Shown one piece after another: positions 14,227 through 50,800 of a stretch of 64,000 nt of DNA. Origin of the DNA: Trichosphaerium sp. ATCC 40318 (taxonomy: Eukaryota; Protista; Tubulinea). A program made the translations under genes and the position numbers. The number at the start of each line of letters is the position of its first letter. Positions within the stretch are counted from its first letter, which is position 1. The notes under the pieces were generated by a model. That model was given only the letters and a program-made list of their open reading frames with translations, had not been told where the DNA came from and ran no database searches. Location: contig JALMLS010000471.1 in assembly GCA_038496445.1 (NCBI GenBank), positions 1-64,000 on the forward strand, read 5' to 3'.

Positions 14227-18680
<4,454 letters not shown>

Positions 18681-27611: not shown

Positions 27612-29471
27612 ATGGGTGCCTGTGAAAGTAGAAGCCCTAAGGATAGGGAAATATCAAAAGCACTACACAAGGCAGGAAAGGAGCGTAAATACCATAAAGC
27701 AGTTCGCATTCTACTGCTTGGTGGCTCAGAATCCGGAAAGTCGACTATAGCCAAACAGATGCATATATTGTACAACGCAACGGATGCACACTATTCAGGG
27801 GAGGTATGTACCCGCTTCTGTGCATTCATGACGTCAAAGCACCAAAATAGCCATCTAAACTTTCTTATTCTTTCATCTGTCTTTCCCTTACCATCTGTTT
27901 CTAAAGGAAAGCGAATGTGTTCCTATATACATAGCGTTTGGTTATTGTCTTACAATGTTTTGTCGTCAAATTGGTGTAGAGGTACGTAACGAAGCAGTTT
28001 TTGTGATGAATTCATTTGCAAAACGCGCTAGTTTATTTCAATGTACACGCGCTGTTAAAATTGGATTCCTTTTGTTTTTTTTTTTTGTTGAGTTAGCCTT
28101 TTTTATTTTGCTCATCACGTGATTATAGGTGCCAAGAGAAATAACGATATGGATACGCAGTAATCAGATAAAGAAGCTGGCTAATTTTTTGGAGCCGCTA
28201 GTAGACGATTTGTCTGCCCTTGTAAACGAAACAAAGACCTTTTCAGGCGCTCACGACGCTACTTTTAAATAGTACGTTTACACATTCTCTTAATAGAACA
28301 AACTGACAGTTTCCAACGGTATTTTACAAAAAAAATCAGCGTCACGTGACGTAACACGTGGTAGATTTTTTTTTTATTATTTTGTCGGTTTCTTTTGTAT
28401 TTTCTGTTATCGGCTCGTATTTCTTAGATTTATATCTAACCGCTGTTATTTAGTTTATTAGAGCACAGAAAGCGTATTCTATCGAAGCGATATGTACCAA
28501 CGAACGAGGATATTTTAAGGATAAAACAAAGGACTACCGGGGTTTCCGAAATTAATGCGCACGTGGACGGCATGCAAATTGATATGGTAGACGTTGGTGG
28601 ACAAAAAGCAGAGAGACGAAAATGGATTCATTGCTTTGAGGGTGTTAATATTGTATTTTATGTTGTTGGGTTGGGCGATTGTATCCTTTTTCCTTCGTTG
28701 TTACTTTTTTTTTTCAGTTTTTTCGAAACCAATGTATTTTCTCCTTGACAAAAATGAGATGACTTGCGTTGTGATCAAAGGAATACTACTGCTTTACGCG
28801 AATCCCTTGAAGTTTTTAAGCAAGTGCTCTCCCTTCGGATGTTCGCAGATAAACCTCTGGTGATCTTGTACAACAAGAACGACTTGCTTAAAGAAAAAGC
28901 AACAAAAATTGATTTGCGCACGTGTTTCCCTGATTACAAAGGTAAGACTCGCTTGAGTTTGGATGACAGAAAGCTAAAAATATACTAGGTGGTCTCAAAT
29001 ACGAGAATGCCCTCAACTTTATAAAAGATAAATTCAGAAGCCTCATACCTCCAGATCGACCTTTTTCAGAACGAGAACTTTCTGCTATAGATTCTGGTAC
29101 GTATTTTCATTTTCTGAAAACTTATCGGAAAAATTGTGTTCCGAAATTTCTTCTTGAGCTGTTTTTTCTTGTTCTCAAGAATGTAATAGATAAATTTGTG
29201 GATATTTTCGATGATATACAGTCCACCGTTTTTAAAGCTATCCTTAGATAACTTTGTGGACATCTTTGATGATTTAAAGTCTCACACATTCACAACTATT
29301 GCGGGTTCTAAAAAGACACGCTCAAGAACAAAGACACGTCAACGATCAAGGACACGGACGGGTTCAAAACCAAGAGGTCGTAGAAGGAGAGCATCTTCAA
29401 TAGCAAAAGAAGGCGTTCGACGATTTAGTACAACCGACAAACCATCCAATTTTTCCAAACGAAGACATTAA
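27612..29471 (+). CDS. Atypical heterotrimeric G-protein alpha subunit with basic C-terminal extension
   Basis: MGAC acylation motif, LLLGGSESGKST, DILRIKQRTTG, DVGGQKAERRKWIHCFE, NKND, SAID. Includes a 75-nt exon at 27907-27981. Confidence 0.92.
28681..28758 (+). other. U12-type (minor spliceosome) GT-AG intron in the G-alpha gene
   Basis: 5' GTATCCTTTT; branch site CTCCTTGAC 9 nt before the end; GAG acceptor. Removal gives GDYDLRC...ALRESL, matching the G-alpha SEYD...RM.ESL segment. Confidence 0.88.
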
Positions 29472-29696
29472 ACAAACAAACAAAAAAAAAAAAAGGAATC
29501 CAAAAAATAAAGCCTGTACATAATACTTACTCCTAAAAACATTGTATGTTATGATAATACAACAAACGTTGACTCACATACGGAGAGTGCATAAAAAAAA
29601 ACTACAAAGTAAACTGCACAACTTTGGAAAAACGTTCAAGTTTATTCATGACTTATATTCGATTCGTCAGCGTTCGTTATTAGCTTCAGTTGTCAT

Positions 29697-31175
29697 TCAC
29701 TCTTGGAGTTTTGTTTCTAAGAGTGCGCGCATGGCATTGTTGCAAAGTGGGAGAATGTTGGTTGGTGGTTTAGTCTCCATTCTAAACTCCCAGCCTATTT
29801 CGGAAGTTACAGGCTATAAATAGATATTGGGTTTTCGTGCCTGCTCTCCCAAACAAAATAGCCTCATCCTTCTGCATGTCAAACATAGCTGTGGATGTAC
29901 CCATACCTAATCAATTAGTTACAACACACAATCAACCAATAAAAGTGAAAGAACGGACCAATATACTTCCCAAAAGGATTGATCTCAATCAGGTATACTT
30001 TGTTGTTTGGCAAGTCCATCGCAAAGTCAATCACCTTTTTTTTTCAATTCAATTAGCGTCCAGTACAGAATTACATTAAACGTACGTATGTCTTTTCCGT
30101 TAGAGGAACTTTATCCTTCAACGAATCAAAGAACTCTAAAAATAAATTATTGGTTTGATGCAAGGTTGGCGGTAAACCATACCAGTAACCATCTTCTCGA
30201 TTTTATCCTTGTCCTTGTGCAAGTGTTCAAAGTATGCAAAGTGATAGTATTGACACATGCAAGTAAGCTTGCCGTCAACTACGAACCCTCTGTACTCGTA
30301 TTCTATTGGAACATCAACAAACTCTCTCAGTACAATCTACACATTATCAATAAGTTGATTTAATGCTGCTAAATGAAGGGCTAATCAACTCACTTTCTGA
30401 GACCACTTGTCAGGGTGTTCGAATGCCAATGTTAAATCCTCATAAATGCGTTCTGAATTCAGAAGAGTGGCAAGGGCTTGTGTTCCTGATGTCATCATGA
30501 GGCCCTTAATATGCGCTGTAACACAGTTAATGGCTGTAACACATATAAACAAAGTTGTATACCTCTGTAAACAGCAATCAATTTTGTGTTTTCGTCATGT
30601 GTTTTTGCTGTTTTCATAATGTCCTTGTAAATCTAAAAACACTATTTCAACATTTGACCACGTGATGCACGTGACATACTTGTAATGTTTTTTCAGAGGT
30701 AAGTGTAGCGTCCTTTGGTGACCGAGAGCTTAGTTTGGCGAAGGCTTGCTTTGATGGGAAGTCTTGAACGACTTTGTCAACCCTAGACGCCAACGCTTTT
30801 AAAATTTGTGGCCAAGCTTCAACATCTTGTTTTCCGCTTTTAAGGTTTGCTTTATATTGCTCCATCTATATGGGTTTAGCGATTGAAGTTGTTTTAAGTA
30901 TTTTTACCATTGCTCTTCCTTCTGTAACGCTAAGATCAAGAAAAAGCGTCTTATATGTGAATTCTTGTAACGCATCATACCTTTCGGGTTGTTACAGAGA
31001 GTTTTATCTAAAATACGTACCAAAAGTCTAAATCAGCCTCTCTTACGCGATTATATATGACATCTAGCTGCCCAGCCAGCTTTTTATCGATGTCAGCTTG
31101 TTGTTTTAATGTCGGGCTTGTTTTTGGGACTGTTGCCTTTTTAAGCGTTATGTTCTTGAGATCACTTGCTTGCAT
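29697..31175 (-). CDS. CDC123-like (R2K clade) ATP-grasp protein with N-terminal WH2-like segment
   Basis: DLDFWYDALQEFTYKT, AFAKLSSRSPKDA, VIDFA..VYLIEINPF, AMFDMQKDEAILFGRAGWEFR. N-terminus MQASDLKNITLKKATVPKTSPTL. Confidence 0.78.
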
Positions 31176-31760
31176 TGTTATATAGTGTACTAAATGGTAT
31201 TTCGGTTTTATCCTAGCAAAACCATAGAGTAAATTTAGACTAAATTATTCGAAAAAACCAAATCTCTCGTTCACAGATCCTCGTTACAGCAAATCTCTTT
31301 TCGAATTTTCCTGACCCGTTTTGGTCAACCTTATTTATGCTTATATGCATGTACTACATTAATTTTATACCTTGGCAATGAGTTTTAAGGCGCTAAAAAA
31401 CTTAGTCAAGTATTTTTTGCAACATGTACTTCTCTCGACTTTGCTCTTCTTAATCAATTCTTAAATTAACCATGCGCAACGTTATATCGCACTACATACA
31501 CAGCCAAAGGATATTTAGTGTTTGGTGCTGTTAAAACTGGCAATAATTATTCCTTAAAAATCAGTAACCTAACTTCAAAAAAAATTGAATGTTTGAGTTA
31601 ATGATGTTTGGCTTTGAATTGTCTGTCACGTTGCATCTACTTCATCTACTGTGTGCGTTGTCTAAACCCAAACTCAAGTGCGTCAAAGTATACGATCGCA
31701 ACCATTGCAAAAAGAGGCGTAATGTGCAAAAAAAGGAAGAAACGTTTTAATATTAGCCCT

Positions 31761-32519
31761 TTACAAAATAGCACAACGTCTCCTTTCTTTTGGTTTTGGC
31801 GTGCTAGTAGGATCAGAAGATGATGTAAGTCCAGGGTTACGCTTTTTGTATATATCTCTAGCCAACTCTATAAAGGAGTGTACGACGTTTACACCTGTTT
31901 TAGCTGACGTTTCCCAAAATTTACATTTAAGATTTCTCCCCAGTTCGTGTCCATCTGCGTTTGGTACTACACGTGCGTCTTCAAGGTCTACTTTATTACC
32001 CGCTATAACTATTGGTACATCATCACTATCATTTGCTCTAAACAAAAATCACGTGTGGGTGTGACGCCATATTTTGATGTATGTATTGTAGTCATCCTTG
32101 TTAATCCTTTTTTTATTGCGTACCGTACGATAGCATCCCGAAACCTTGTAATTTCTGTAAAACTGTTCTGGTCGATAATAGAATAAACAAGAAGAAAGCC
32201 ATCACCATGTTTATAATACTACACAATAATAAAAATTAAAAAAAAAATGTTTTTTGGATTTTTTTGGTTAAAAAACGTGTTTAAAGTGTTACTCACGTGT
32301 TTTACGTACTTGGTCTCGAAGAAATGAGTACTCTTCTTGCCCTGCAGTATCTAAAATATCCAAAACTACTGGTGTTCCATCTAAATCTACTGTCTTTCGA
32401 TACGAATCTTCTACAGTTGGATCATAGCTTGTTATAAATTGCCGTTGTACAAATTGTATTGTTAATGCTGATTTACCCACTGCACCACCGCCTGCAACCA
32501 CTATCTTACATTCAGTCAT
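31761..32519 (-). CDS. Ras-family small GTPase with CaaX (CAIL)
   Basis: [45 protein letters not shown]. Confidence 0.95.
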
Positions 32520-32809
32520 AACAGAAGCGGTTTACTCCCAAAATAGAGGTGTTTTCATCAAGTCTCGAAAAGTTTAGTTTCCTTTTTTCTTCATGACCTC
32601 CTTAATACCTGAAAACAACTATAGTTCTTACGTATATACGCACTTGATACTAAAATAGCGATACCATAGAGTCATCAAGGGATTTAATGCTTTTCAAGTT
32701 GAGAAAAACGCACGTGTTGTTTGAACAAGTCAGTGCACAGTTTGTGTTTAAGTGTTACAACAGGTACTTCCTTTCATTCCACTTGTCCGCGGCTAGTTTT
32801 CTCAGTAAA

Positions 32810-35012
32810 ATGAACTATTACAACTGCACCTACTGCTGTACGTTTCTTGAGAATTACAAGAGAGCTTTTTCCGAATGACGCCACTAACATCACCAAATAG
32901 CTTTCATCGCTGTATTTTGCATCCTCATTACTCTAACGCCTCTTTGTAATGCACGGGTGACGACTTTGTTTGAGCACGTGTCTGTAAACGCCAGCGACAC
33001 TACAACGCTTGAGGCGTTCGGTGTGGATGCCACAGCGTCGCCACCAATGCTGTATTACCACACTATGTCCAGTCACGTATATTTCTGTTTTATTAAGCTA
33101 ATATTGTATGTAGGTTCTAGTTCGGGCGTAACAAGTCAGTTCGTGTTTGTTTCACGAACGTTGGGTGAAGGAAATGTTCAGGAGAAAACCCAAGTATTTT
33201 CAAGAGATGACGACCTCCTAACAAACCCCCAACGGGGTATTTCTTACATCCCGAATATCGACTCTTTTTCAGTTGTATCAGGTGGTGCGTTGTTTATCAT
33301 TGGAAATAGATTAAACTCCTCTGATCCGCGGGAGGTACACGTGATTTCCATTTGGGTTTTTTTTATTATAATTTTCAAGAATATCTGGTACAATGTTAGA
33401 ATAACTCCTTTTAACTAGTTATGGTATGTTAATAATGTACAACAAGTTAAGATAAACAGTGATGGTAGCTCCGTTACAAATTACGTGGTCCGTACAAGTT
33501 GATGCATCAAAAGGGAATTCAACTAAAATAAAAGTCTAGGTAAAAGAAAATACCCTTGTTTTTGTGGTAGCGGAGAGAAATGCGGAGTCCTCGCAAATAC
33601 TCACAGTGGACCTAACAAATCCGTCTAAATTAATATTCCTTCTTGATGGTCAATCTACAGCGAAGCAAAATGTGGTAGCGACAAGGAACTAGTACGCCAT
33701 AAAAAGTTGATTTATCCTTCTTACTAACTCTTTTTTTTTTTTCTACAGTTTTTATGTACTCAACATGGGATTCGAGTCACAACGCTTTTGGCTTGCTAGA
33801 TGGGAGGACCCAATGTTTTTTAATACTTGCAGTGGTCTTACATCAGAGGATATCTATTTAAAATCAATAGATTACGAAACAGATACTATGGTAGTAGTAA
33901 CAGATGTTCGAAGCTCAAGCAGTGTTTGGCTTATTTCCGGTGAAAAATGTAAATTCTTAAGGTCTTTTGGCGATAAAATCGACTTTGTCTCTATCAATGT
34001 CCATCAAGGCCAAACACGTGCAGCCTTTGGAACAAGTTCATTCTTACTTGAAGTCTCCGAGGAAGGAGAGCCATCACTACTATTCGTCGCAGGCAGCAAC
34101 GAGAACATTCAACAACTACACGTGCGTTTCCGTTTTTTTATTCTTTGTACTCACTTGTTTCATCAGGCTTTTAAAGGAGACTGGCTTGTCGCTACAAAAT
34201 CGACAACAGACGATGTAGTAACTTTAAGAGCCATTGGTGAAGAAGGGCCGAAAGCAATCATACCAGAGGCCTTTGGTGTTACAGTACAGATATCCAATGA
34301 CAAGAATTTTTTGGCTGTAGGATGGAGATCAAGAGAACATGCTGAGATCTTAGGTGGGTATGAAATAGATGACCTATGCTTACTCAAAGGAATGGACGCT
34401 TCTCCAATTGCCCAATTTGATGGCGCAGCACTACCAGTAATACCAAGATTTCAGAGTTCACTTTTATACGCCTCACTCGGTGAGAGTGTTGGAAGCTTTC
34501 CTTCAGTGGTACTTAATACAACTTAAGTCACTACTGTTTGTTAACAAAAGCAATAGGTGTCAACGAGTGTTATAGTTGGATTCGATGTCACTAACATCAC
34601 ATGTGATGAAGTGCCTTCCACTTTAGCTCCAACAGCGGTACCACCAACATCAGTACCACCAACAATCTCGCCTACAACATTAGCACCAAGTACTGTACCT
34701 CCAACTTTGCAACCGTCTACGTTACCTCCTACAACGATCGCCACTCCATCAGTGGCTTCATCTGGGTTGCAGCTGGATGCTGCTTGTATTACAATAGAAA
34801 TGGGACAGTGCCAGTACGTGTTTCTATTATTGTGTCTTTGGGTTGTTATTGGGTAAACCAGAAGGGCTAAAATAAATTTTAGTTGCAGTCGTACGCCATG
34901 CGTATGTGACAATACTTGCACTTGTGAGGTTATTCCTGGAGATTTTTTACTTTGTTTCCTTCTTGCTCCAGGGAAAAGCATAAATTATGGCGATCTCACG
35001 TGCTGTGGATAA
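32810..35012 (+). CDS. Secreted protein: beta-rich domain, Pro/Thr mucin-like linker, Cys-rich C-terminus
   Basis: Signal-peptide-like SFIAVFCILITLTPLCNA after the first intron; PTAVPPTSVPPTISPTTLAP repeats; C-terminal CSRTPCVCDNTCTC...CCG. Confidence 0.72.
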
Positions 35013-35540
35013 CAGGTCTGCCAAGTAAAACAAAAATCTTGTAAATAACAAAAATCTACCTGTATTTATTCAACAATAAAAACCAACTCGCTATTTGTTG
35101 ACTCGCTTGCGTCTAAAAACCTTGTTGGATTAAATACTAAATAAAGGGAGACTACTGAATTTCAAAAAAATCACGTGGCGAATAGGGTTTTGAGAGAAAG
35201 CGCTCCTTGGGTTTGTCCGCGAAGTAGTAACCCAATTGGTCGCCCACCTTTAAGTTGTAAAACGTTGCTTTTCATGTGAAGAAAAATATGGACTTTTTAG
35301 GTTTGTTTTATGATATCACTCGAGACTGAATACCACAACCTTTATTGATGTATTTCTGGTTTATTGGTACACTCAGATTCGAACCTAATTGTGAGCACTG
35401 TTTATTCAACGCCATCCTTTTGCGAATAATTTAAAGGTGTGTTGTGACTAGATTTTCGTGGAGAAAAAATAGGATGTATTGTTTGTACTTGGTGCTGTTA
35501 TCGCACAAAACAAGTAACTGTTATATATTTGAAAGCCAAG

Positions 35541-37380
35541 CTAGAATTCCACCGTCTTTAAATTCTGAAGCGCTGTGAGTTTTCCAATGCAATCACTAAA
35601 TGTTTGTCAACCAAAACCTGTCAATCAACAAAAATTGGAAAAAAAAACCCAAAAAAAAATATTGATCAAACATTCTAGCTAAGACATACGTGTTCTTGAC
35701 GCTTGTATTTCTCACATCGAGAGTGCGTAATAGTATTAATTTATTTATGCTATCTAGACCACCAGGTGTGACGTTACACCACTGTAGGTTCAAAAACTCT
35801 GAGAACATAAAAAGTAAGAAGAAAGGAAGAAAAACAACAATTGAATGTTGTGAGGTACCAAGGTTCGTTAAGCAAGTGAATTTAGCCAGTACCACATCAT
35901 CAACAGAATGCCATCCTGCTAGATCAAGCCACTTCAAATTCGTCAAGGATTCGAGAGCGCACAAGCCTTGAACAGTAATGACATCACTAATTTCATCGCT
36001 ATTTTCAATAGCTGATAGGTTCAGGTATTTCAAGTTTGTTAGGTATGCAAGGTATGCCAGGCAATGGTCAGTATTTATAGCATGTTCTTCCATCTTTAGC
36101 GATTGAAGATTTGTGAGTAAAGCAATGTAACTGATGCCCTAAACCGAAACGTCAACAAAACTTTCTCCCAATTTCTAATTTTTTTTTTATTTTACCTCTT
36201 CTCTCGTCGCTTGCCCGCAGTGCGACAAGTTCAACTCTGTAAGATTTGTGAGAGTAGTAATAAACTTGAGACCTGTAGATAGATAAAGTAAGAACACATA
36301 TTCACGTGATAAAAGCTCGACAGTACCTTTAGCTGTAATGGAACTCTCACGCAGATCCAATGACTAAAAAAATGAGATCAACGCTTCAAAAAAAACCCCG
36401 TGAACCGCGGTACCTTCAAACTTATAAATCCTGCTAGCTGTTTTATAGCGCTATCTGGAATATAACCTATTTTTGTAAGCTGCAAATCAAAAAAGCCGAA
36501 AAGTTTTTTCAATTTTTTGAACGTTTTTTTTTGTTGTTTTTCATTTGTTGCATTTTTAAACACGTACCAGGTAGTTTGAGACGCTCTAGTTTCACGAGAG
36601 AAGACAGCTCTAGCGTTAAGGAACGTTTTCATTGAGGTAAAACTGGATTTAAAAAAAATAGGATACATATTCGACTCCTCTCTTTGAAACTTGATTACAG
36701 TGTCTTAATTTTAGCGTGCGAAGATTTGTTAATTGTGCAACAAACTCCAGAGACTTGTTGGTTACTTTTGAGCACCATGAAAGGTTTAGCAATCTCAAAC
36801 TTTGAAATGAGGTTAAATGTCTCAAACCCTAAAATAATGTCACTTTAAGCGATGAGGTGGTTACTGCTGAGCGCTCCAGCGGTTTTTGGCGAAGCTGTCA
36901 AAAAAAAAAAACTAAAAGCGTTGAAAAGTTGCCAAAGATGTTGGAAGCGCTAGTTTATACGTACCTTGTTCGTTATGGTCTTTTTAGCAAGGTTCAAGTC
37001 AGTTAGCCTTGAGTACTGAGATAGGTTTATGAGCACAGAATCGTTTACTTTTATGTTTGAGAGGTCAATGTACGCAAGTGAAGAACGTATAATATACTTC
37101 CATCTTTAAAATCATGATCAGCATTCTGAGTGTCATAAAACGAAAAGTAGTGCGTCGTACAGCGTGCAGGTCTCACTACATCGTATTTGGTCGGCAAGGC
37201 AGAGAAATGATGATATTAACGCTACAATCTCGCTGGGTAACGACGCGAACGCTAGAACGTTAACGGAGAAGCTACGTGAATAAAAGACGTTATACCAGAT
37301 ACTTGATGAATTCTAAAACGATGCTGCAATGACTCGGGGATGCCATTGAACCAAAAAGCGTCTATTACAGGCGAGGCCAT
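35541..37380 (-). CDS. F-box / leucine-rich-repeat protein (multi-exon)
   Basis: FASLPSEIVALISSFL (F-box) and repeated LTNLxxLxLxxCxxVT LRRs. Confidence 0.88.
36608..36666 (-). other. U12-type GT-AG intron in the F-box/LRR gene
   Basis: Minus strand 5' GTATCCTATTT; perfect branch site TTCCTTAAC, then GCTAGAG. Removal joins RGVEY to LSSLVKLERL in frame. Confidence 0.88.
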
Positions 37381-37622
37381 GGCTGTTGTTGTGCTATTTA
37401 TGCGCTTGAGTTTAAGCCGATATTAGTTTATGACACTTTAGTATTGTGCAGATGACTACAGTTTCCGTACATGTACAACGTCACATTTGAAGACAATGTG
37501 ATTAAGTCTTCAAAAAAAAACCAATGCGATACTGCGTAACTGTAATACGTAATAGAAGAGGAGCCTTTGTTTGATAACGAAGCGTTGATTGCTTTTATTA
37601 ACATCAAACCAAACGCATCTTC

Positions 37623-39554
37623 ATGTCAAGGAAAAGAAGCGCGTCCTTTAATAAAGGGAATAAGAATCAAAAAAAGAAACAAAAAACGGAGCATAACCCA
37701 ATGCAAGTCCCAATGGAAGACGGTTACAAAATAGTACAGGAAGGAAAAGTAGAAATTCTCATGGTAGACGATAAGCATACGCCTGAGAAGACAGTACGTA
37801 GAGTTGTTGGCGCCTACCTTCGATACCTTGTAAAATCTTCGACAATTGTCTGTTTTTGTTCACACGTTGCTGCTGAGGCTAACAAAAGTAGATTGGGTAC
37901 TACAGCCGCCAAATGGAAAGTAACCGAAACTTGACAACTTTGTTACTACAAACGTGCCACAAACCAGGCTGGGAGGTACAATACAACATTGCGACATCAT
38001 TTAACTACTTTTTGAAGGTTTTAGATGCGTTTGCTTCAACAGGCGTTACAGGCATTAGATGGACCAAGGAAGTATCCTCCAAAGGCGATCCCATCAAAGT
38101 AACAGCAAATGACATTGATGGCTCGTACGTTTTTTTTCAGATTATCAGCTTTCCACCTCTAACGCGCTGTACAGCGTAGTAGAGCTAATAAAGAAAAATA
38201 TTACTAGAAACAAAGTAAACGTACGTAAAAATCCCTTCTACCATTAGAGTCTGCTTGTTTCACTATCTTTACACATATTAGATTGAGGTGACGCAAAAGG
38301 ATGCCAGTATACTAATGTTAGAGCGGTCGTGGGACTATATTCGTATCCTCTTTTTTTATTAGTTTATTCTGAGTATATTTTCACTCTTTTTTTTCCATGA
38401 CTGACGCTAAGAACTCGATCCATATGGCTCTCCGTGTAATTACATGGAAAATGCTTTTCGGAATCTACGAAATGGCGGTATTTTAGGCCTTACATGCACA
38501 GATATAGTACAATTTCTTTAAATTCTTTGTTGACTATGAAGACTAACACATAAATAGTCTGCTGTTTGCGGTATGTACCCCAATGTTGCCTTGAGACATT
38601 ACGGAGGGCTGACTTGTAGGACTGTTGTATTTTATAAAGAACTAGGTAAAAAATATCTCAACGGTTTTTTTGTCAATTTTTTACCTACTTTTCGTCAACT
38701 GCTAAAAAACCTTCTAGGTGCCCGTGTCGTTATTGCTGCTGCAGCCCGAGCTGCTGCGCGATGTAGTAAAGGCATTCGCGTACTCACATGTATGTACAAG
38801 TACGTGTAAACCAACGTTAGCGGTAACAATCAAATTAAGGAGCTGCTTATAGGGACCATTACCTTGTAATCGCTTTACAAGTAGTGCGTGGTTGCAAACC
38901 AGCAGATCAATGCCTATCACGAGTTAAGCCTGTTTACTATGCGCCAACAGCAAAGCGTTACTCTTTCGACAGAACTAAGTGTAGTTTAGAGAACCCTGGC
39001 TCAAATGTACGTTTTTTTTGTTGAAAATTGATTGTAATCTCGTTGTAGATAATGGAGTTGGGTCCTGTTTGGACAGGTCCTATTTTCGATAGTGAGATTA
39101 TGGAAAAGGTTCACAGTGAAGCTTTAAAACGTGAGAATATGAAGAATAACAAACCGTTTATGCGGATACTTGGGGTACGCTTTTCTGATTATAAGTCGCT
39201 AACGAGGTCGTGTCTTACTTCTATATTTGATTTAGCTCATTGTTGAAGAGTCTAAGCTTAATATACCGTTTTACTGGAGCCTTGAAATGTTTGGGATTGC
39301 TGATTTGCCTAAAATGTCTCGTGTGAGTGCTATGTTCCACAAGGCTGGGTACAAATGCAGTAGAACTCATTTTGGATCAACATCGTTAAGGTTCGCGTAG
39401 ATGACAATAGAAAAAAATAAAAACTCTAAACGCTCTGTGTAGGACTGATGCGCCTGCTAATAAGATTATTGCTCTATTAACACACAAGGAATCAGCAGAA
39501 GGCAAGGAAAACGACATAGAATCTCTGGCACTGTCGTGTGGTCTTATCAAGTAG
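37623..39554 (+). CDS. TRMT1L: TRMT1-like tRNA (guanine-N2,N2)-dimethyltransferase, TRMT1L type
   Basis: VLDAFASTGVTGIRWTKE, ANDID, LDPYGSPCNYMENAFRNLRNGG, ALRHYG..FYKELGARVVIAAAARAAARCSKGI, ELGPVWTGPIF. The AAARCxKGI block is recalled as TRMT1L-type rather than TRM1. Confidence 0.82.
38343..38411 (+). other. Probable U12-type GT-AG intron in TRMT1L
   Basis: 5' GTATCCTCTTT; branch-like TTCCATGAC 10 nt before the end; AAG acceptor. Removal gives WDYIQLDPYGS. Confidence 0.75.
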
Positions 39555-39624
39555 AGCTACACTAACCAAGGCTCATTTTATTCTTTGTACTATAACTCTA
39601 ACAAGAATCGTTTTATTTTGATGT

Positions 39625-40810
39625 TTATTCGTTAACTGTTTTAAGAATACCTCTGAAACTCATGATACCGCCATCCATACCTTGCCAACCTTCATGGTAC
39701 CCTCTCCTATTTCTGGGCTTATTTATGTCTTCTTCAATCTGCGCTCTATTGCTGCGGATTGCTTCTCTCGTTTCCTTCTGCTCTTCTTTTGACACTCCAA
39801 GGCCAGCAAACAGACATATTTTGAGGCATATCTCAGCTGGTATTTTACCACATAAAATAACGTGCAAGCGTGACGCGTGATACATGATGTTTCGGCATCC
39901 TAAGGATTTTGTAGAGGGAACCTTATGCTCTGTGTCAATTAACCAGAAAGCAACGTAGGATCGTCTTGCTGTTGTAGATGATGTATTTGATACCTTACTA
40001 AGCCTGTGGATGACTTCGTAGTTAGAAAACGCTATCGCTGTTCCAGCTTTGATAGGTACGCAGATATCGTCATCTCCTAGTTTATAGTGGCCGTCGTGGC
40101 CACCATAGCACAAATGCCTTGGTCGAAACCCTAATTCGCCTCCTTTTAAGCTATCCGAGAATTCATAGTAACAGATCCCAACGCCCTAGTTCAGTTAGGC
40201 TGTACAAGCGAGTATTGTTCTAAGGTACTTTGATGTGTTCTGCGTTTACGCCTTCAATATGCCAGAATCCTTCGTACTCACTATTGGGCTCCATTACAAA
40301 GCTCTGTGCTTTCACGACAACTTGTAGGTTGCGTGTGATTTGATTGGTACGGCTGAGGATACCCAATTTGTTGAACAGAGGCATAATACTGGTCCCAAAA
40401 AGATCTGCAACAGTTTTATATAAATCTCCGTGTTCGCCTACTAGATAGGGTTCAATGGATGATATTTTTGTCACTTGATTTGTCCTTGTATTGACTGTAA
40501 ATTCGGATGGTACAAGGCGGTATTCGTCCGTTTGATTTCCTTCTTTATTCGTTTTAGTAATCTTAAGAGCAAAGTTATTTGGATTTATATGCTTCGTTGC
40601 GCCTTGAACGTCGGTAACAGGCTTAGATCTATTACCAAGAGCGTGAAAGGTATTTTTGGTGGTTTGACAGAGTTTTAACGGTATTTCTTTCGTACAAATA
40701 TTGTATGGCTCAAAATACAGGCCATAGCGTTTTGAATACTCTCCTTGCTCCCAAAATTGCAATCCTTCAAATTTGTTGGATATATTGTACGTTGAAATTC
40801 TATTTCCCAT
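39625..40810 (-). CDS. DUF4246-like 2OG-Fe(II) oxygenase-fold protein
   Basis: LQVVVKAQ..YEGFWHIEG..EHI, LGFR, AFSNYEVIHRL, RSYVAFWLID. MGNRIS is a possible myristoylation motif. One intron. Confidence 0.75.
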
Positions 40811-42543
40811 GCGTTTTAACAAGTAAGTGAAGAAGCCGCTTCTGATAGGTGGACAGTTTTCAAATAAAATTAGTCAAGCTGCACTGTGGCTTAACGATGT
40901 TGGAATGTAAACCGCGAGTAAAAACAAGCGAATCTCAGAAGAATACACTAATACACAAGTATGCAACAAACACGGAAAAAGCCACTATGTGTACATAACG
41001 GGATGTGAGTGGATTCAATCGCGTAGTTGATGCGTGATGAACTATAATCGGTAGGAGGCGGACATAATTATGGCACTAGAAACGAAGGACCAGAAGGACG
41101 CGCACCTTTGCTGCAATTGATCAAGTCGCTATAATAAACAAATCATATTTACAACATCGGCGGTTTTTAATCAGAAACATTACGTACAAAAAAAAAGAAT
41201 TGTTCTTTCGCGTCAATATCTTCAGGAATCCCTTCGTATTTAGAAAACCGGTTTGTTAATGTTCAACCAAAAAAACAATTACGCCAGTTTCATTCAGAAC
41301 TGTTACTCCTAATTAGCTCGCTTGGCGAATCCTACCTACGCTGTCTTCACCTATTTTTGGTTACGCGTAGCCAGTTACGTTTTGTAGAACCAGTTATGCC
41401 AAATCTTCGCTTGCGTAACGCGTGCGTTTGGTTAGTATATCTGTTTGAAGTAAAAAAGAGCCTTGTTTTAAAAAAATCAGAAGAGATAGAGCTTGAACGC
41501 TCGTACTTGGTCTCATGCTTGACGCAATGGTATACATCGTAAAACTGGATTTGAATAGTTTCAGATTAGGTCTAAAACCAGTTTCCCTTGTAATACAGCC
41601 TGATGAACACATAGCTTGTGGCCTAGTGCTTGAATGTCGCTAGATACGAAGTAGACAATGATTCATCAGCAAGACGCTGCTCACAAGTTTGTTTGTTGTT
41701 ATTAGCGCGGATGCGATAGAATTCCAGAGTTTTGAAAAAGTTGCTCTCAGATTTTCAAAGCAATTCTAACTCGGCTTGCTTTCTTTCAGCAGACCTCAGG
41801 TTGTACTCGCCGCCATAAGTATTAATATCTTGCTGCACCTGAGGCAGGATTTAATACCATGCAACGGTAGCTTTTGGCTCCTGTGTGCACCACAGACTTT
41901 AACTGCGTCTAGAGTAAGTTGTGCTTGGAATCTACAAGTTTTGGCTGGAAACTACCGATAAACTGAAAGATGGTCTATGGCTCGTTGCTGCGTATAGTTT
42001 AAACACTTCAACCCGAAAACTACTAACCGTTGTGATGTTGTTGCTGGCGAATTCTGGCGCCATTACAATGGTTCTATCACTACTGACAAGCGCTAGGACG
42101 CCGAAGGATCTACTTGTAATTAGTTTTTGCACTTCTGTCTGGAATTGAACCGGTAAGTAGACAACCGTTGTAGCTAGTGTATGTAATGCTCATTTCGCAC
42201 ACCTTTAGGTCTCTTCGGCGAAGTGATAAATTAGAGAATCGGATTCGAATTTCGGATAACAACCCTCTTTCGAACAACCAAATGCAACTTTCGAACAACA
42301 AAATGCTGCAAACGTTGTGCTAAACCGTGTGGTAGCATTTGTTTTCTCATTGGTGACAAAAAGTGTGCCGTTTCGATGATAATGACCCATCCACAAATCG
42401 CGCTGTAAATGCACACACTTGTTCACAACGGTCTGGGAACGCGTCTGCTGCAGTTTGAGCGGCTACAACATTGTAACCATAATTTATTTTTTTCAATAAA
42501 TCTCGTGTTCTTAAACGATTTTCTTTTTTAGTACTATCACAAA

Positions 42544-47829: not shown

Positions 47830-50800
47830 TTAAACGCTACTATCTGATTCGTCTCCTGAACCCTTTGCATGCACTACTTCACTTGTAACAAAGTTACCTC
47901 TGCTGACTTTCTCTAGTTTTCGTTTCATCTCTGCAAGACGTTGTTTTAAGTCAGCGTTTGACTTTTCTAAAGTGTCTACTTTTTGTTGTAGTTCGTTTTC
48001 ACTTGTATCAAAACCACCTGGGCCAAAAGTACCAGACATGACTCTCGAACTAGTCGAACCTCCTGTGCTTTTTTTGAGTTCTTCTTCACTTTTTGTCATG
48101 TAGTACATCCGTGGGATAAGCAATGATAAGATTGATATAAATGGTCCGAGAATAAGACATACAGATCGAAGAACAAACGCCACCTCACGGTTACTTGATC
48201 CAAAGACCTTGTGACAAGTATCAGTAAAACAACCAATAGATTTTGATACATACCTGAATGACGATGATAATAATAATGAAAAACGTGAGGTTGTAAACAG
48301 CGAATCCAATCGATCTTTAAAAAAAAAATTAGTCATATTTTTAAACATCAGTTCGAATGTCATGTCCTCACCTCGATTCGTTGTATAGTATTGCCTTTAA
48401 TTTCCATATTTTATATACCCAATAAAGTCCATATACCAATACACCAGCATTGAAGAGCATGAGAATGGCAAAGAAGATCGTATCCCTTGTTGATGTTGCA
48501 CAAGTAAAGTGATCATCTGACAGAATAAAAGGAGCTTCTTCCACAAGTTCAGCTTGACCGATGCTTACTATTGTCCATAGAGTAAGGATAACAATCTCTA
48601 TGGATACTATAATAGCAACAATAGGGATTATCATCATGTTCGTTACTTTGAAGACATCCAAGGACTTCACAAGGAATATTTGACCAATTCTATAAATCCT
48701 TGCAAACATTGCTCCGTAAGTCAACTACAAACGATTGTAAGGTATCGTTACAATTTAAGATAGTGGAGTTAGATGTACGTACACCAAATCCAATTGCTAG
48801 AAACCATCTTACAAGAGTACAATGAACGTCATCCGTGTGAAGAGTCCAGAAAAATATTGAACAATACATGACAATAGTACCAACCTAGTGGCTTCTTTAG
48901 TATTTGATGTAAAAATAACAAAGCAAGGTATTGTCAGTACCAAAGCGAGAATAACGAATAGCGGTTGCGAAGCGCGTATGACTATATGGTTGTGAAATAT
49001 TAGTATCCACACGATGAGACCAAGTGTGATCAGAATAACAGAAGCAACCATACATAGGATTACAAGCTCGCTTGTGTACTCTAGAAGTAAATACATCAGC
49101 TTTCTTCAACTACGAGCTGGGATTTCATGACGTACTGTACCAACCGTATGTTGTTTCTCTTTCATCCCATTTTGGCGCTGGATAAACAAACTGGTCTGTG
49201 ACAGCAAAGAGAGGAGCAATTATCTGATATTCGACATTCTCATCAAGCTGAACAGTCAAACCACTTCTTCCCAGATTTTGACCGAACTGATCAAACTCGT
49301 ACTCACCACAGAAGCCTGTTATATCAATAGCGTTGATAGCTTCTTGTAGTTTATCAGCATCGAATGAACTAGAACATGGTTTATTAGCAAAAGGTTGAAC
49401 AAAGATTTGTCACGTGCTTAGCTGTTTCATATGCGTATTGAATGATATATCCTGCACTATAACCTATCATCCCTGCAGGAGAAAATTAAAGAAAGAGAAG
49501 AACCTTAAAGGGGATATGTGTCGTACCTACTGTACCTGGTTCCATTCCATACATATCCAGGTACTTATTGTTGAATAGTATAGGCGAAGTTTCAGTGCCG
49601 TTACTAATGAAGTGATGGTAAGGAACATTGTTGTCATTTTCGTCATAACGCTCTGATCGTAGCCTCTTATCCCACTAAACAAGATAATAAGCTAACATGG
49701 GACAAAAAAGTCTGTCGTACATTCGCTCCAGCGACCATGACGTATCGAGAGTCTTTTCCTAAATTATGAATAGGACAAGGCCGAGACAATAAGAAAGCCT
49801 GTAACCGCATAAGTATAGATAGGAAGTAAAGGACATACATTGGCGTTGTAGTTCATTCTCTTTGCTGTCTCCAATAAAGCAATACATGAAAAGAAAGTTC
49901 CTCCCAGAACAACATCTGTAACGAATAGCGATTAGGTAAACCGATCTTTCTGTTTGAGAATTACGCACCAGGTTTTTTTTCCTTCAGTACCGATATGAGC
50001 TCGTCAATCTCAGGTTGTACCCTGGTTGCGTTTGAAGAAAATGTGATACTTTTATTGTAAACAAGATCCATTCCCAAGAATTCTATACTCCTGAGTGCGC
50101 CCTCCGCGATAGATCTGGTGAAAGCAATATCTTGTATCTCGTAAGTACAACATAGAATTTAATCAATTACTAGCTAGTCGGCCATACCTTCCCAATAAAC
50201 AGCTATTGTTTTGACATTATTCGACACAGCAAGCAAGTTTAAAGCCTCCACCATGAACCTCGTAGTTGGCTGTATGAGACTACTTGTGTACTTCAATCTT
50301 CTTCCAAAGGGTAAAGTACATGGGTAGCTTAAGGTTTCATCACAAATATAGTTACTGGGAGTAGCGGCGCTAGCTAAAAGAGCAGTGTTAGTAACAGTTG
50401 CATAATTATCACTGATTGTTGCGTACGTAAGAGAGAATTAACTTTCAGATCATTTGCGACTATTGCCCCAGGAAGTCCCAAATGGGTTGTTACCGGCTTT
50501 GAAAATGTATTTTTAGAAAGGGCACGTGTTTGTGAAAAAAAAACGTGATGTGACGAAATTTCAACTTAAATAGGAGACAAACAGAAAAGAGAGCGTACCA
50601 ATAATACAAAGTCAACGTTCTCGTTATCGATGAGGTGTCTTGTAGCGTTAGCTACCGCGTCACCGTTACCTGCTAAAGAAAACCCATTAGTCAAGCTGCA
50701 GTAGACATAGTCGAAGTAAAGTACAAAAAAGACGCCAATGTTAAAGGTATCCAAGTAACCGTACCTGTACCGAGCTCTATAATTTCAACGTTATAATTAG

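Follow-up and report, generated by a model that had tools for sequence, protein, structure and literature searches.

Three U12-type introns within 10 kb of a tubulinean amoeba genome, Trichosphaerium sp. ATCC 40318

1. Introduction

Canonical U12-type introns, described in animals, plants, and some fungi and protists, combine an RTATCCT donor with a nearby TCCTTRAC branch site and tolerate acceptors other than YAG. The branch site usually lies ~8–20 nucleotides (nt) from the 3′ splice site, and introns of this type are biased away from phase 0. Here, we describe three such introns in the marine amoeba Trichosphaerium sp. ATCC 40318, all within 10 kilobases (kb) of a 64,000-nt stretch referred to as the window (contig JALMLS010000471.1, positions 1–64,000; assembly GCA_038496445.1). 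They interrupt a G-protein alpha subunit (G-alpha) gene, an F-box/leucine-rich repeat (LRR) gene, and a gene of the TRM1 family of transfer RNA (tRNA) methyltransferases. An earlier note on this DNA had reported the three introns, put U12-type introns at about 2%, and proposed an active minor spliceosome in a possibly undescribed lineage with de novo intron gain.

The abundance of U12-type introns differs widely among the closest described systems. In humans, they make up 0.36% of introns. Among fungi, Rhizophagus has 0.272% and Basidiobolus 0.554%, the latter being “one of the highest outside Amoebozoa” (PMC10639083). Within Amoebozoa, Protostelium aurantium retains 265 U12-type introns, Pelomyxa schiedti 90, and Acanthamoeba ~12, and in Pelomyxa, 69% of aligned human minor intron positions hold major introns (PMC10639083). 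Physarum polycephalum has 20,899 U12-type introns, or ~12% of its introns, with a TTTGA branch motif, a co-evolved U12 small nuclear RNA (snRNA) reading GCAAAGAA, and many non-canonical intron ends (bioRxiv 10.1101/2020.10.12.336362).

Trichosphaerium sp. is not an undescribed lineage: a draft genome of 70,866,254 bp in 710 scaffolds has been published, with 37.7% GC, 27,369 transcripts, 7.7–8.7 introns per gene, and introns and exons averaging 75 and 154 nt, respectively (PMC10521059). That paper makes no mention of spliceosomes, and the organism is absent from the text of a minor-intron survey of ~3,000 genomes (PMC10639083). Our literature search found no report of TRMT1L as a minor-intron gene and none of U12-type introns in Tubulinea. 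The introns described below add a tubulinean amoeba to the lineages with working, fairly rich minor splicing.

2. Splicing Signals of the Three Introns

All three introns are present where the earlier note placed them, and their U12-type signals can be read from the sequence. Each is of the GT-AG subtype, and they share GTATCCT donors and TCCTTRAC-like branch sites located 8–11 nt from GAG, GAG, and AAG acceptors, respectively (slashes below mark splice borders). (i) Intron 1 (28681–28758, plus strand, 78 nt, phase 1) carries a strict motif pair within the G-alpha gene. The exon ends in T, the donor GTATCCTTT begins at 28681, and the 3′ part reads TCTCCTTGAC aaaaatGAG. Its branch site, TCCTTGAC, occupies 28742–28749, with the branch A 10 nt before the last base of the GAG acceptor, and the borders are GGCGAT T/GTATCCTTTTTCC...TTTTCTCCTTGACaaaaatGAG/AT GAC. 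(ii) Intron 2 (36666–36608, minus strand, 59 nt, phase 0), also with a strict motif pair, lies in the F-box/LRR gene. An exonic T precedes the donor GTATCCTAT at 36666, the 3′ part is GTTCCTTAAC gctaGAG, and the branch site TCCTTAAC at 36622–36615 places its branch A 8 nt before the last base of the GAG acceptor, giving the borders GAATAT/GTATCCTATTTT...ACGTTCCTTAACgctaGAG/CTGTCT. (iii) Intron 3 (38343–38411, plus strand, 69 nt, phase 1) belongs to the TRM1-family gene; here, an exonic C precedes the donor GTATCCTCT, and the 3′ part reads TTTTCCATGAC tgacgctAAG. The branch site TCCATGAC, with one mismatch, is found at 38394–38401, its branch A 11 nt before the last base of the AAG acceptor, and the borders are TATATT C/GTATCCTCTTTT...TTTTCCATGACtgacgctAAG/AA CTC GAT.

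The three introns form a class distinct from the neighbouring U2-type introns. The 19 other mapped introns of the same genes use donors such as GTACGT, GTACAA, GTAAAA, GTATGT, GTACC, and GTAAGT-like sequences, often have a CTAAC-like branch site, and end, with few exceptions, in TAG or CAG. With two of three in phase 1, the introns of the window follow the phase tendency of canonical U12-type introns. They differ from these in being very short (59–78 nt, near the host mean intron of 75 nt), in a branch distance at the short end, and in a loose donor position +8, which is T, A, or C in the window, with all four bases represented among the matches elsewhere in the genome. Still shorter U12-type introns, of ~42 nt, are known from Blastocystis (PMC10639083).

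A strict pair GTATCCT-N25–55-TCCTTRAC is expected by chance ~0.007 times per 64 kb; the window holds two, plus the third intron with its single mismatch. Scanning the window at every RTATCC(T/C) site revealed no additional U12-like intron: the remaining sites are not followed by a T-rich intron body, and most fall in long open reading frames (ORFs) or antisense to genes. Two candidates were rejected. The first, at 15786–15863 on the plus strand (GTATCCTTTT...CTTGACgctCAG), runs antisense to an exon and a GTACGT...TGTAG intron of a minus-strand coiled-coil gene, and this look-alike is a caution against U12-type calls made on motifs alone. The second, at 48480, lacks a T-rich intron body. Outside the window, 4 kb past its end, an 84-nt U12-like intron occurs at 68258–68341 of the same contig (G000:C113, plus strand; L036:359–442), reading GTATCCTTAAC...TGTCCTTGACgttgTAG/ and flanked by open frames on both sides.

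3. Removal from Transcripts and Restored Reading Frames

The three introns are cut from messenger RNA (mRNA) at the predicted borders, with two junctions seen directly and the F-box junction through contig bookkeeping. Transcript contigs were mapped on 34300–39900, and intron 1 was checked by a separate route. For intron 1, a public library holds the 360-aa protein P0001, which matches the exon at 100% identity; it contains ...GLGDYDLRCDQRN..., spanning GLGDYDLRCDQ, and is encoded on an intron-free JGI mRNA contig of 1,554 nt. When this contig is aligned to the window, one block ends at 28680 and the next starts at 28759, both at 100% identity, so that intron 1 is exactly removed. The mapped region, in turn, yields 23 splice joints in 5.6 kb. 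Among them, the 38342-to-38412 joint across intron 3 recurs in contigs from three runs of two studies (X1, X4, and X5), in which the ten U2-type introns of the same gene are also skipped. These contigs are labelled “RNA?” and are taken as mRNA-derived because they are intron-free across more than 20 introns. In all three genes, the donors GTATCCTTT, GTATCCTAT, and GTATCCTCT sit at transcript-defined borders.

Excision of intron 2 rests on the length bookkeeping of one contig, its joint not being among the joints listed. In X4 record 10, genomic positions 35859–36137 correspond to contig positions 115–393, and 36662–36827 to 597–762; two mismatches across 36662–36666 reflect over-extension of the alignment into the intron. 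Between the two blocks lie U2-type introns at 36139–36195, 36273–36326, 36364–36413, and 36467–36567, which leave exons of 77, 37, 53, and 40 nt. Their sum, 207 nt, is exactly the content of the contig between 36138 and 36667 and fits only if the 59 nt of 36608–36666 are removed; this segment is therefore excised. A 26-nt exon stretch of the F-box gene, searched for exactly in JGI metagenome contigs, gave no match and thus no independent transcript for intron 2.

Removal of each intron also restores a conserved frame, as had been claimed. Without intron 1, the product reads VVGLGD-Y-DLRCDQRNTTALRESL, with the conserved G-alpha frame VVGLGD-Y-DLRCDQRN, and in Pfam scans, which were run exon by exon rather than on joined models, PF00503 profile positions 148–216 match upstream and 226–280 downstream, in collinear order. 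Loss of intron 2 gives RGVEY/LSSLVKLERLKL, whose LRR register agrees exactly with that of the repeat before it, SLEFVAQLTNLRTLKL; if retained, the intron introduces a stop 7 codons on. Removing intron 3 produces DYI-Q-LDPYGSP, from the S-adenosylmethionine-binding motif region of TRM1 enzymes.

4. Minor-Spliceosome snRNAs

The whole assembly was searched with snRNA family models, for which the family cut-offs are 39 bits for U11, 33 for U6atac, and 53 for U12. U11 scores 66.4 bits and combines its donor-reading 5′ end, UAAAAGGG, with an Sm site. U6atac reaches 51.9 bits. A candidate U12 carries the invariant branch-site reader GUGAGUAAGGAAAAUAAU, which reads GUAAGGAAAAU, together with the Sm site AAUUUCUGG. 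In U11 as in U12, the recognition sequence is canonical and complementary to the intron motifs. An Rfam scan of the 64-kb window itself found no snRNA. U11, U12, and U6atac, along with the canonical intron signals, support the active minor spliceosome that had been proposed.

Excision would then follow the canonical route. U11 snRNA is expected to pair with the extended donor GTATCCT and U12 snRNA with the branch site TCCTTRAC, and the 3′ splice site would be set by its closeness to the branch point (8–11 nt), not by a YAG or polypyrimidine signal. Such a distance-based choice would explain the GAG, GAG, and AAG acceptors. We infer that the minor spliceosome performs the excision. In annotation, gene callers that insist on a YAG acceptor or a U2 donor will predict wrong models for several hundred genes of the assembly.

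5. Genome-Wide Abundance

The assembly comprises 70,278,838 bases in 642 contigs. Strict pairs, that is, a GTATCCT (or ATATCCT) donor followed at a set gap by TCCTTRAC, were counted and compared with two controls: the pattern read backward and the two motifs in reversed order. With a GT donor and a gap of 25–55 nt, 76 pairs were observed, against 5 in the backward control and 8 in reversed order (net 71), and a chance origin of the motif pairs is therefore excluded. Gaps of 56–86 nt gave 56 pairs against 5 (net 51), and the AT donor at 25–55 nt gave 21 against 2 (net 19). For GT or AT donors at 87–117 nt, 29 pairs stood against 5, a net of ~20 that allows for slightly more noise than the control shows. 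Genome-wide, paired motifs are ~10–15 times more frequent than in the controls, and strict U12-type introns number ~190, or 2.7 times the first class, a figure that takes in an assumed AT class for gaps of 56–86 nt and a small longer tail. The AT-AC share, ~20%, is in range of the ~26% reported for humans (PMC10639083).

When one mismatch is allowed for GT donors with gaps of 25–55 nt, 605 matches stand against 253 in the control, a net of 352 ± 29; about half of the one-mismatch matches listed resemble real introns, in agreement with this net. Scaling 352 by 2.7 gives approximately 950 U12-type introns genome-wide, plausibly 500–1,400, where the lower bound allows for a control that may under-count noise and the upper for the uncounted two-mismatch class. 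The denominator of 210,000–240,000 annotated introns is the product of 27,369 transcripts and 7.7–8.7 introns per gene (PMC10521059). By motif counts, U12-type introns therefore make up about 0.4% (0.25–0.65%) of introns. This share, the AT-AC fraction, and the U11 and U12 recognition sequences all match canonical U12 systems. The host level resembles that of vertebrates and of the fungi with more U12-type introns, and it is high within the ordinary range.

The “about 2%” of the earlier note is fair as a local count: the window holds maybe 200–260 introns, of which three U12-type introns are 1.2–1.5%. It does not extend to the genome: ~0.4% is an ordinary level by the yardstick of the note itself, which had named a genome-wide fraction at ordinary low levels as counting against its inference. 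Nor is the clustering exceptional. About 0.9 U12-type introns are expected per 64-kb window, ~6% of the ~1,100 windows of the genome should hold three or more, and some three 10-kb stretches with three U12-type introns are expected by chance genome-wide. Strict matches fall within 10 kb of each other in 6 pairs, against 3.3 expected, which is a mild excess only. Three in 10 kb is a sampling peak from whole-genome scanning and no sign of a lineage-wide expansion.

6. Age of the Intron Positions

G-alpha genes form a very large family in this genome: 38 places match the 73-aa exon upstream of intron 1, and the best-matching paralog shares only ~50% identity with the gene of the window. In five other loci, which amount to four distinct paralogs, the Tyr codon interrupted by intron 1 is likewise split by an intron behind its first base. 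At L007, the intron is U2-type, 51 nt long, and bordered by T/GTACGC...TAG/AC. The near-identical copies L008 and L012 have a U2-type intron of 65–66 nt (T/GTAAGC...TAG/AT), and L020 one of 209 nt (T/GTACGT...TAG/AT). L024 (G000:C28:375028–375171 and downstream) has a GC-AG intron of 115 nt, T/GCACGT...TAG/AT. The frames of these paralogs resume in good G-alpha sequence, for instance YDAVLEEDPTQNR or YNMTITENNSTNRLEESL. Elsewhere in the family, L005, L006, and L029 have no intron at that Tyr codon, and in L009, L011, and L022 an intron lies three codons further on. The intron position is thus common to three sequence groups, and the U12-type version is found solely in the gene of the window. 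Two G-alpha relatives from other organisms, P0004 and P0006, are uninformative on intron positions because they come from intron-free metatranscriptome contigs.

The de novo gain proposed earlier does not hold for the G-alpha intron, whose codon and phase are occupied by U2-type introns in at least four distinct paralogs, L007, L008/L012, L020, and L024, the last with GC-AG ends. The position is old within the gene family, and the difference lies in a change of intron type; that a separate insertion struck this very nucleotide is much less probable. The switch most likely ran from U12 to U2 in the paralogs, a direction favoured because Pelomyxa shows massive minor-to-major conversion and because it agrees with established knowledge. 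The family offers a clean within-genome case in which one position holds U12-type, U2-type, and GC-AG introns, and it bears on minor-to-major conversion. For intron 3, the sole TRM1 paralog found, L035 (G000:C56:143047–143139, plus strand), is canonical and reads ...NVIDLDPYGAPSIFVDAAVQSV...; its U2-type intron lies in the D of LDPYG, 6 nt further downstream than intron 3, and it is uninformative on the age of intron 3 because the position differs.

7. Interpretation and Alternatives

Taken together, we consider it likely that the window contains three genuine U12-type GT-AG introns, handled by a conventional minor spliceosome in a genome where such introns are ~0.4% of the total, that their proximity is a chance cluster, and that the G-alpha position is old. 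Protostelium, Pelomyxa, and Acanthamoeba share with this host the retention of minor splicing, canonical signals, and conversion between minor and major introns at shared positions; they differ in numbers, since the ~900–1,000 U12-type introns estimated here from motifs would be the largest amoebozoan set after Physarum. The likeness to Physarum lies in an amoebozoan host with short introns, in U12-type introns within fast-evolving families, and in paralogs that are informative on intron type. In contrast to Physarum, the share is ~30 times lower, at ~0.4% rather than several percent, canonical forms of the branch site and U12 snRNA stand in place of the TTTGA motif and its co-evolved U12, and each of the three introns is GT-AG. 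A high local density of U12-type introns, as found here, does not equal a Physarum-like expansion.

Several points weigh against this reading. The figure of 0.4% is estimated from motif excess and not from classifying the annotated introns. The share may be too low, since U12-type introns with at least two mismatches go uncounted, or too high, since the backward-read control may miss part of the noise. Approximately 11 of the 76 strict matches are identical copies on small contigs (e.g., C38, C382, and C456; C76, C192, and C343), and ~15% of strict matches are probably duplicate haplotigs; such copies swell numerator and denominator alike. As for the minor snRNAs, which the earlier note had named as a check, U11 and U6atac exceed their cut-offs, while the U12 candidate, full-length, scores 39.2 bits, under its Rfam gathering cut-off of 53, and a search of the assembly for U4atac (RF00618) gave no match, a miss that is uninformative on absence.

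U6atac is a further point of difference from canonical systems. The only candidate among those scored (45 of 3,091 first-look candidates), at L002:1501–1621 (G000:C20:307774–307894, plus strand), reads GAGCCGAGAGA against the family consensus GAAAGGAGAGA, with GCCGA in place of the donor-pairing AAGGA. This AAGGA normally pairs with UCCUU of the donor. Either another copy exists, or donor recognition by U6atac is relaxed, and the latter would fit the variable donor position +8.

A bolder version of the favoured reading is possible, and we put it forward tentatively. It holds that the genome contains on the order of 1,000 canonical U12-type introns, a set that among amoebozoans would be second to that of Physarum alone. 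At 0.5% or more, their share would equal or exceed the highest known outside Physarum, and the G-alpha family would preserve a U12, U2, and GC-AG series at one position. If true, Trichosphaerium would be a tractable system for studying intron switching between two spliceosomes.

Among the alternatives, the one that survives best, though it appears unlikely, is a moderate enrichment with some recent gain: a true share of 0.6–1.5%, above every known lineage but Physarum, in which degenerate signals escape counts limited to one mismatch. One in three introns of the window already has a branch-site mismatch, the one-mismatch class is 5 times the strict class, so the two-mismatch class may be sizeable, and donor position +8 is variable. 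However, no hidden degenerate class emerged in the 64-kb sample, where other donor-like sites have no T-rich body and mostly lie in ORFs or on the wrong strand, and the half of the one-mismatch matches listed that do not resemble introns already look like noise.

Less probable still is a lineage-wide expansion, a Physarum-like or intermediate burst of gained U12-type introns reaching 1.5% or more, of which the window would be typical. The local share of about 1–2%, the fourth U12-like intron 4 kb past the window end, and the origin of two host genes in fast-evolving families agree with it. Against it, a share of 2% would require ~4,000 or more introns, and the motif excess supports about 500–1,400; the intron signals, U11, and U12 are canonical, with neither the TTTGA motif nor the altered U12 of Physarum; the G-alpha position is common to paralogs; and, at ~0.9 introns per window, ~6% of windows are expected to hold three or more. 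Finally, it is very improbable that the major spliceosome removes these introns as ordinary U2-type ones whose likeness to U12-type introns is accidental: all three are GT-AG, their lengths match the genome mean, and their dependence on U12 and U6atac is inferred, but the paired 7-nt and 8-nt motifs far exceed the controls, the branch motif sits 8–11 nt from acceptors that are not YAG, neighbouring U2-type introns use GTACGT-like donors with TAG or CAG acceptors, and the U11 and U12 snRNAs of the genome are complementary to the motifs.

8. Host Genes and Neighbouring Sequence

The window is 37–44% GC, and its introns measure 42–182 nt. Two of the host genes are those named in the earlier note, G-alpha and F-box/LRR, and both have Pfam matches. 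The G-alpha gene (27612–29250, plus strand, with an approximate end of the coding sequence) was defined from the alignment of the 1,554-nt mRNA contig (L037), PF00503, and protein P0001. Its 360-aa product is encoded across five introns, four of them U2-type (donors GTATGT, GTACGT, or GTAAGA) and one U12-type. The F-box/LRR gene (35599–37312, minus strand, extent approximate) was delineated by frame analysis, Pfam, splice joints, and intron ends. Its F-box exon lies at 37312–37136, and LRR exons reach down to about 35600. Pfam matches on this gene are F-box-like, F-box, LRR_6, and LRR_14; the F-box matches fall slightly short of the Pfam cut-offs. The other five mapped introns are U2-type, with GTAC or GTAA donors and TAG or CAG acceptors.

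The third gene (37623–39554, plus strand) encodes a putative N2,N2-dimethylguanosine tRNA methyltransferase-like protein of ~426 aa in 12 exons, outlined by transcript joints, an open frame, and PF02005. Four exons match PF02005 in collinear order, and exon-wise translation gives an open frame. Ten of its introns are U2-type and one is U12-type, all eleven joints being present in transcript contigs. By these domain matches, it is a member of the TRM1 family; the narrower label TRMT1L, given to it earlier, is tentative. Downstream of this gene, transcript contig X1-3 (2,557 nt) extends ~840 nt beyond the stop codon (39552–39554), as seen in the window from 39441 to 39900 and beyond, and reaches minus-strand ORFs at 39625–40822, which suggests that the convergent genes there have overlapping 3′ ends.

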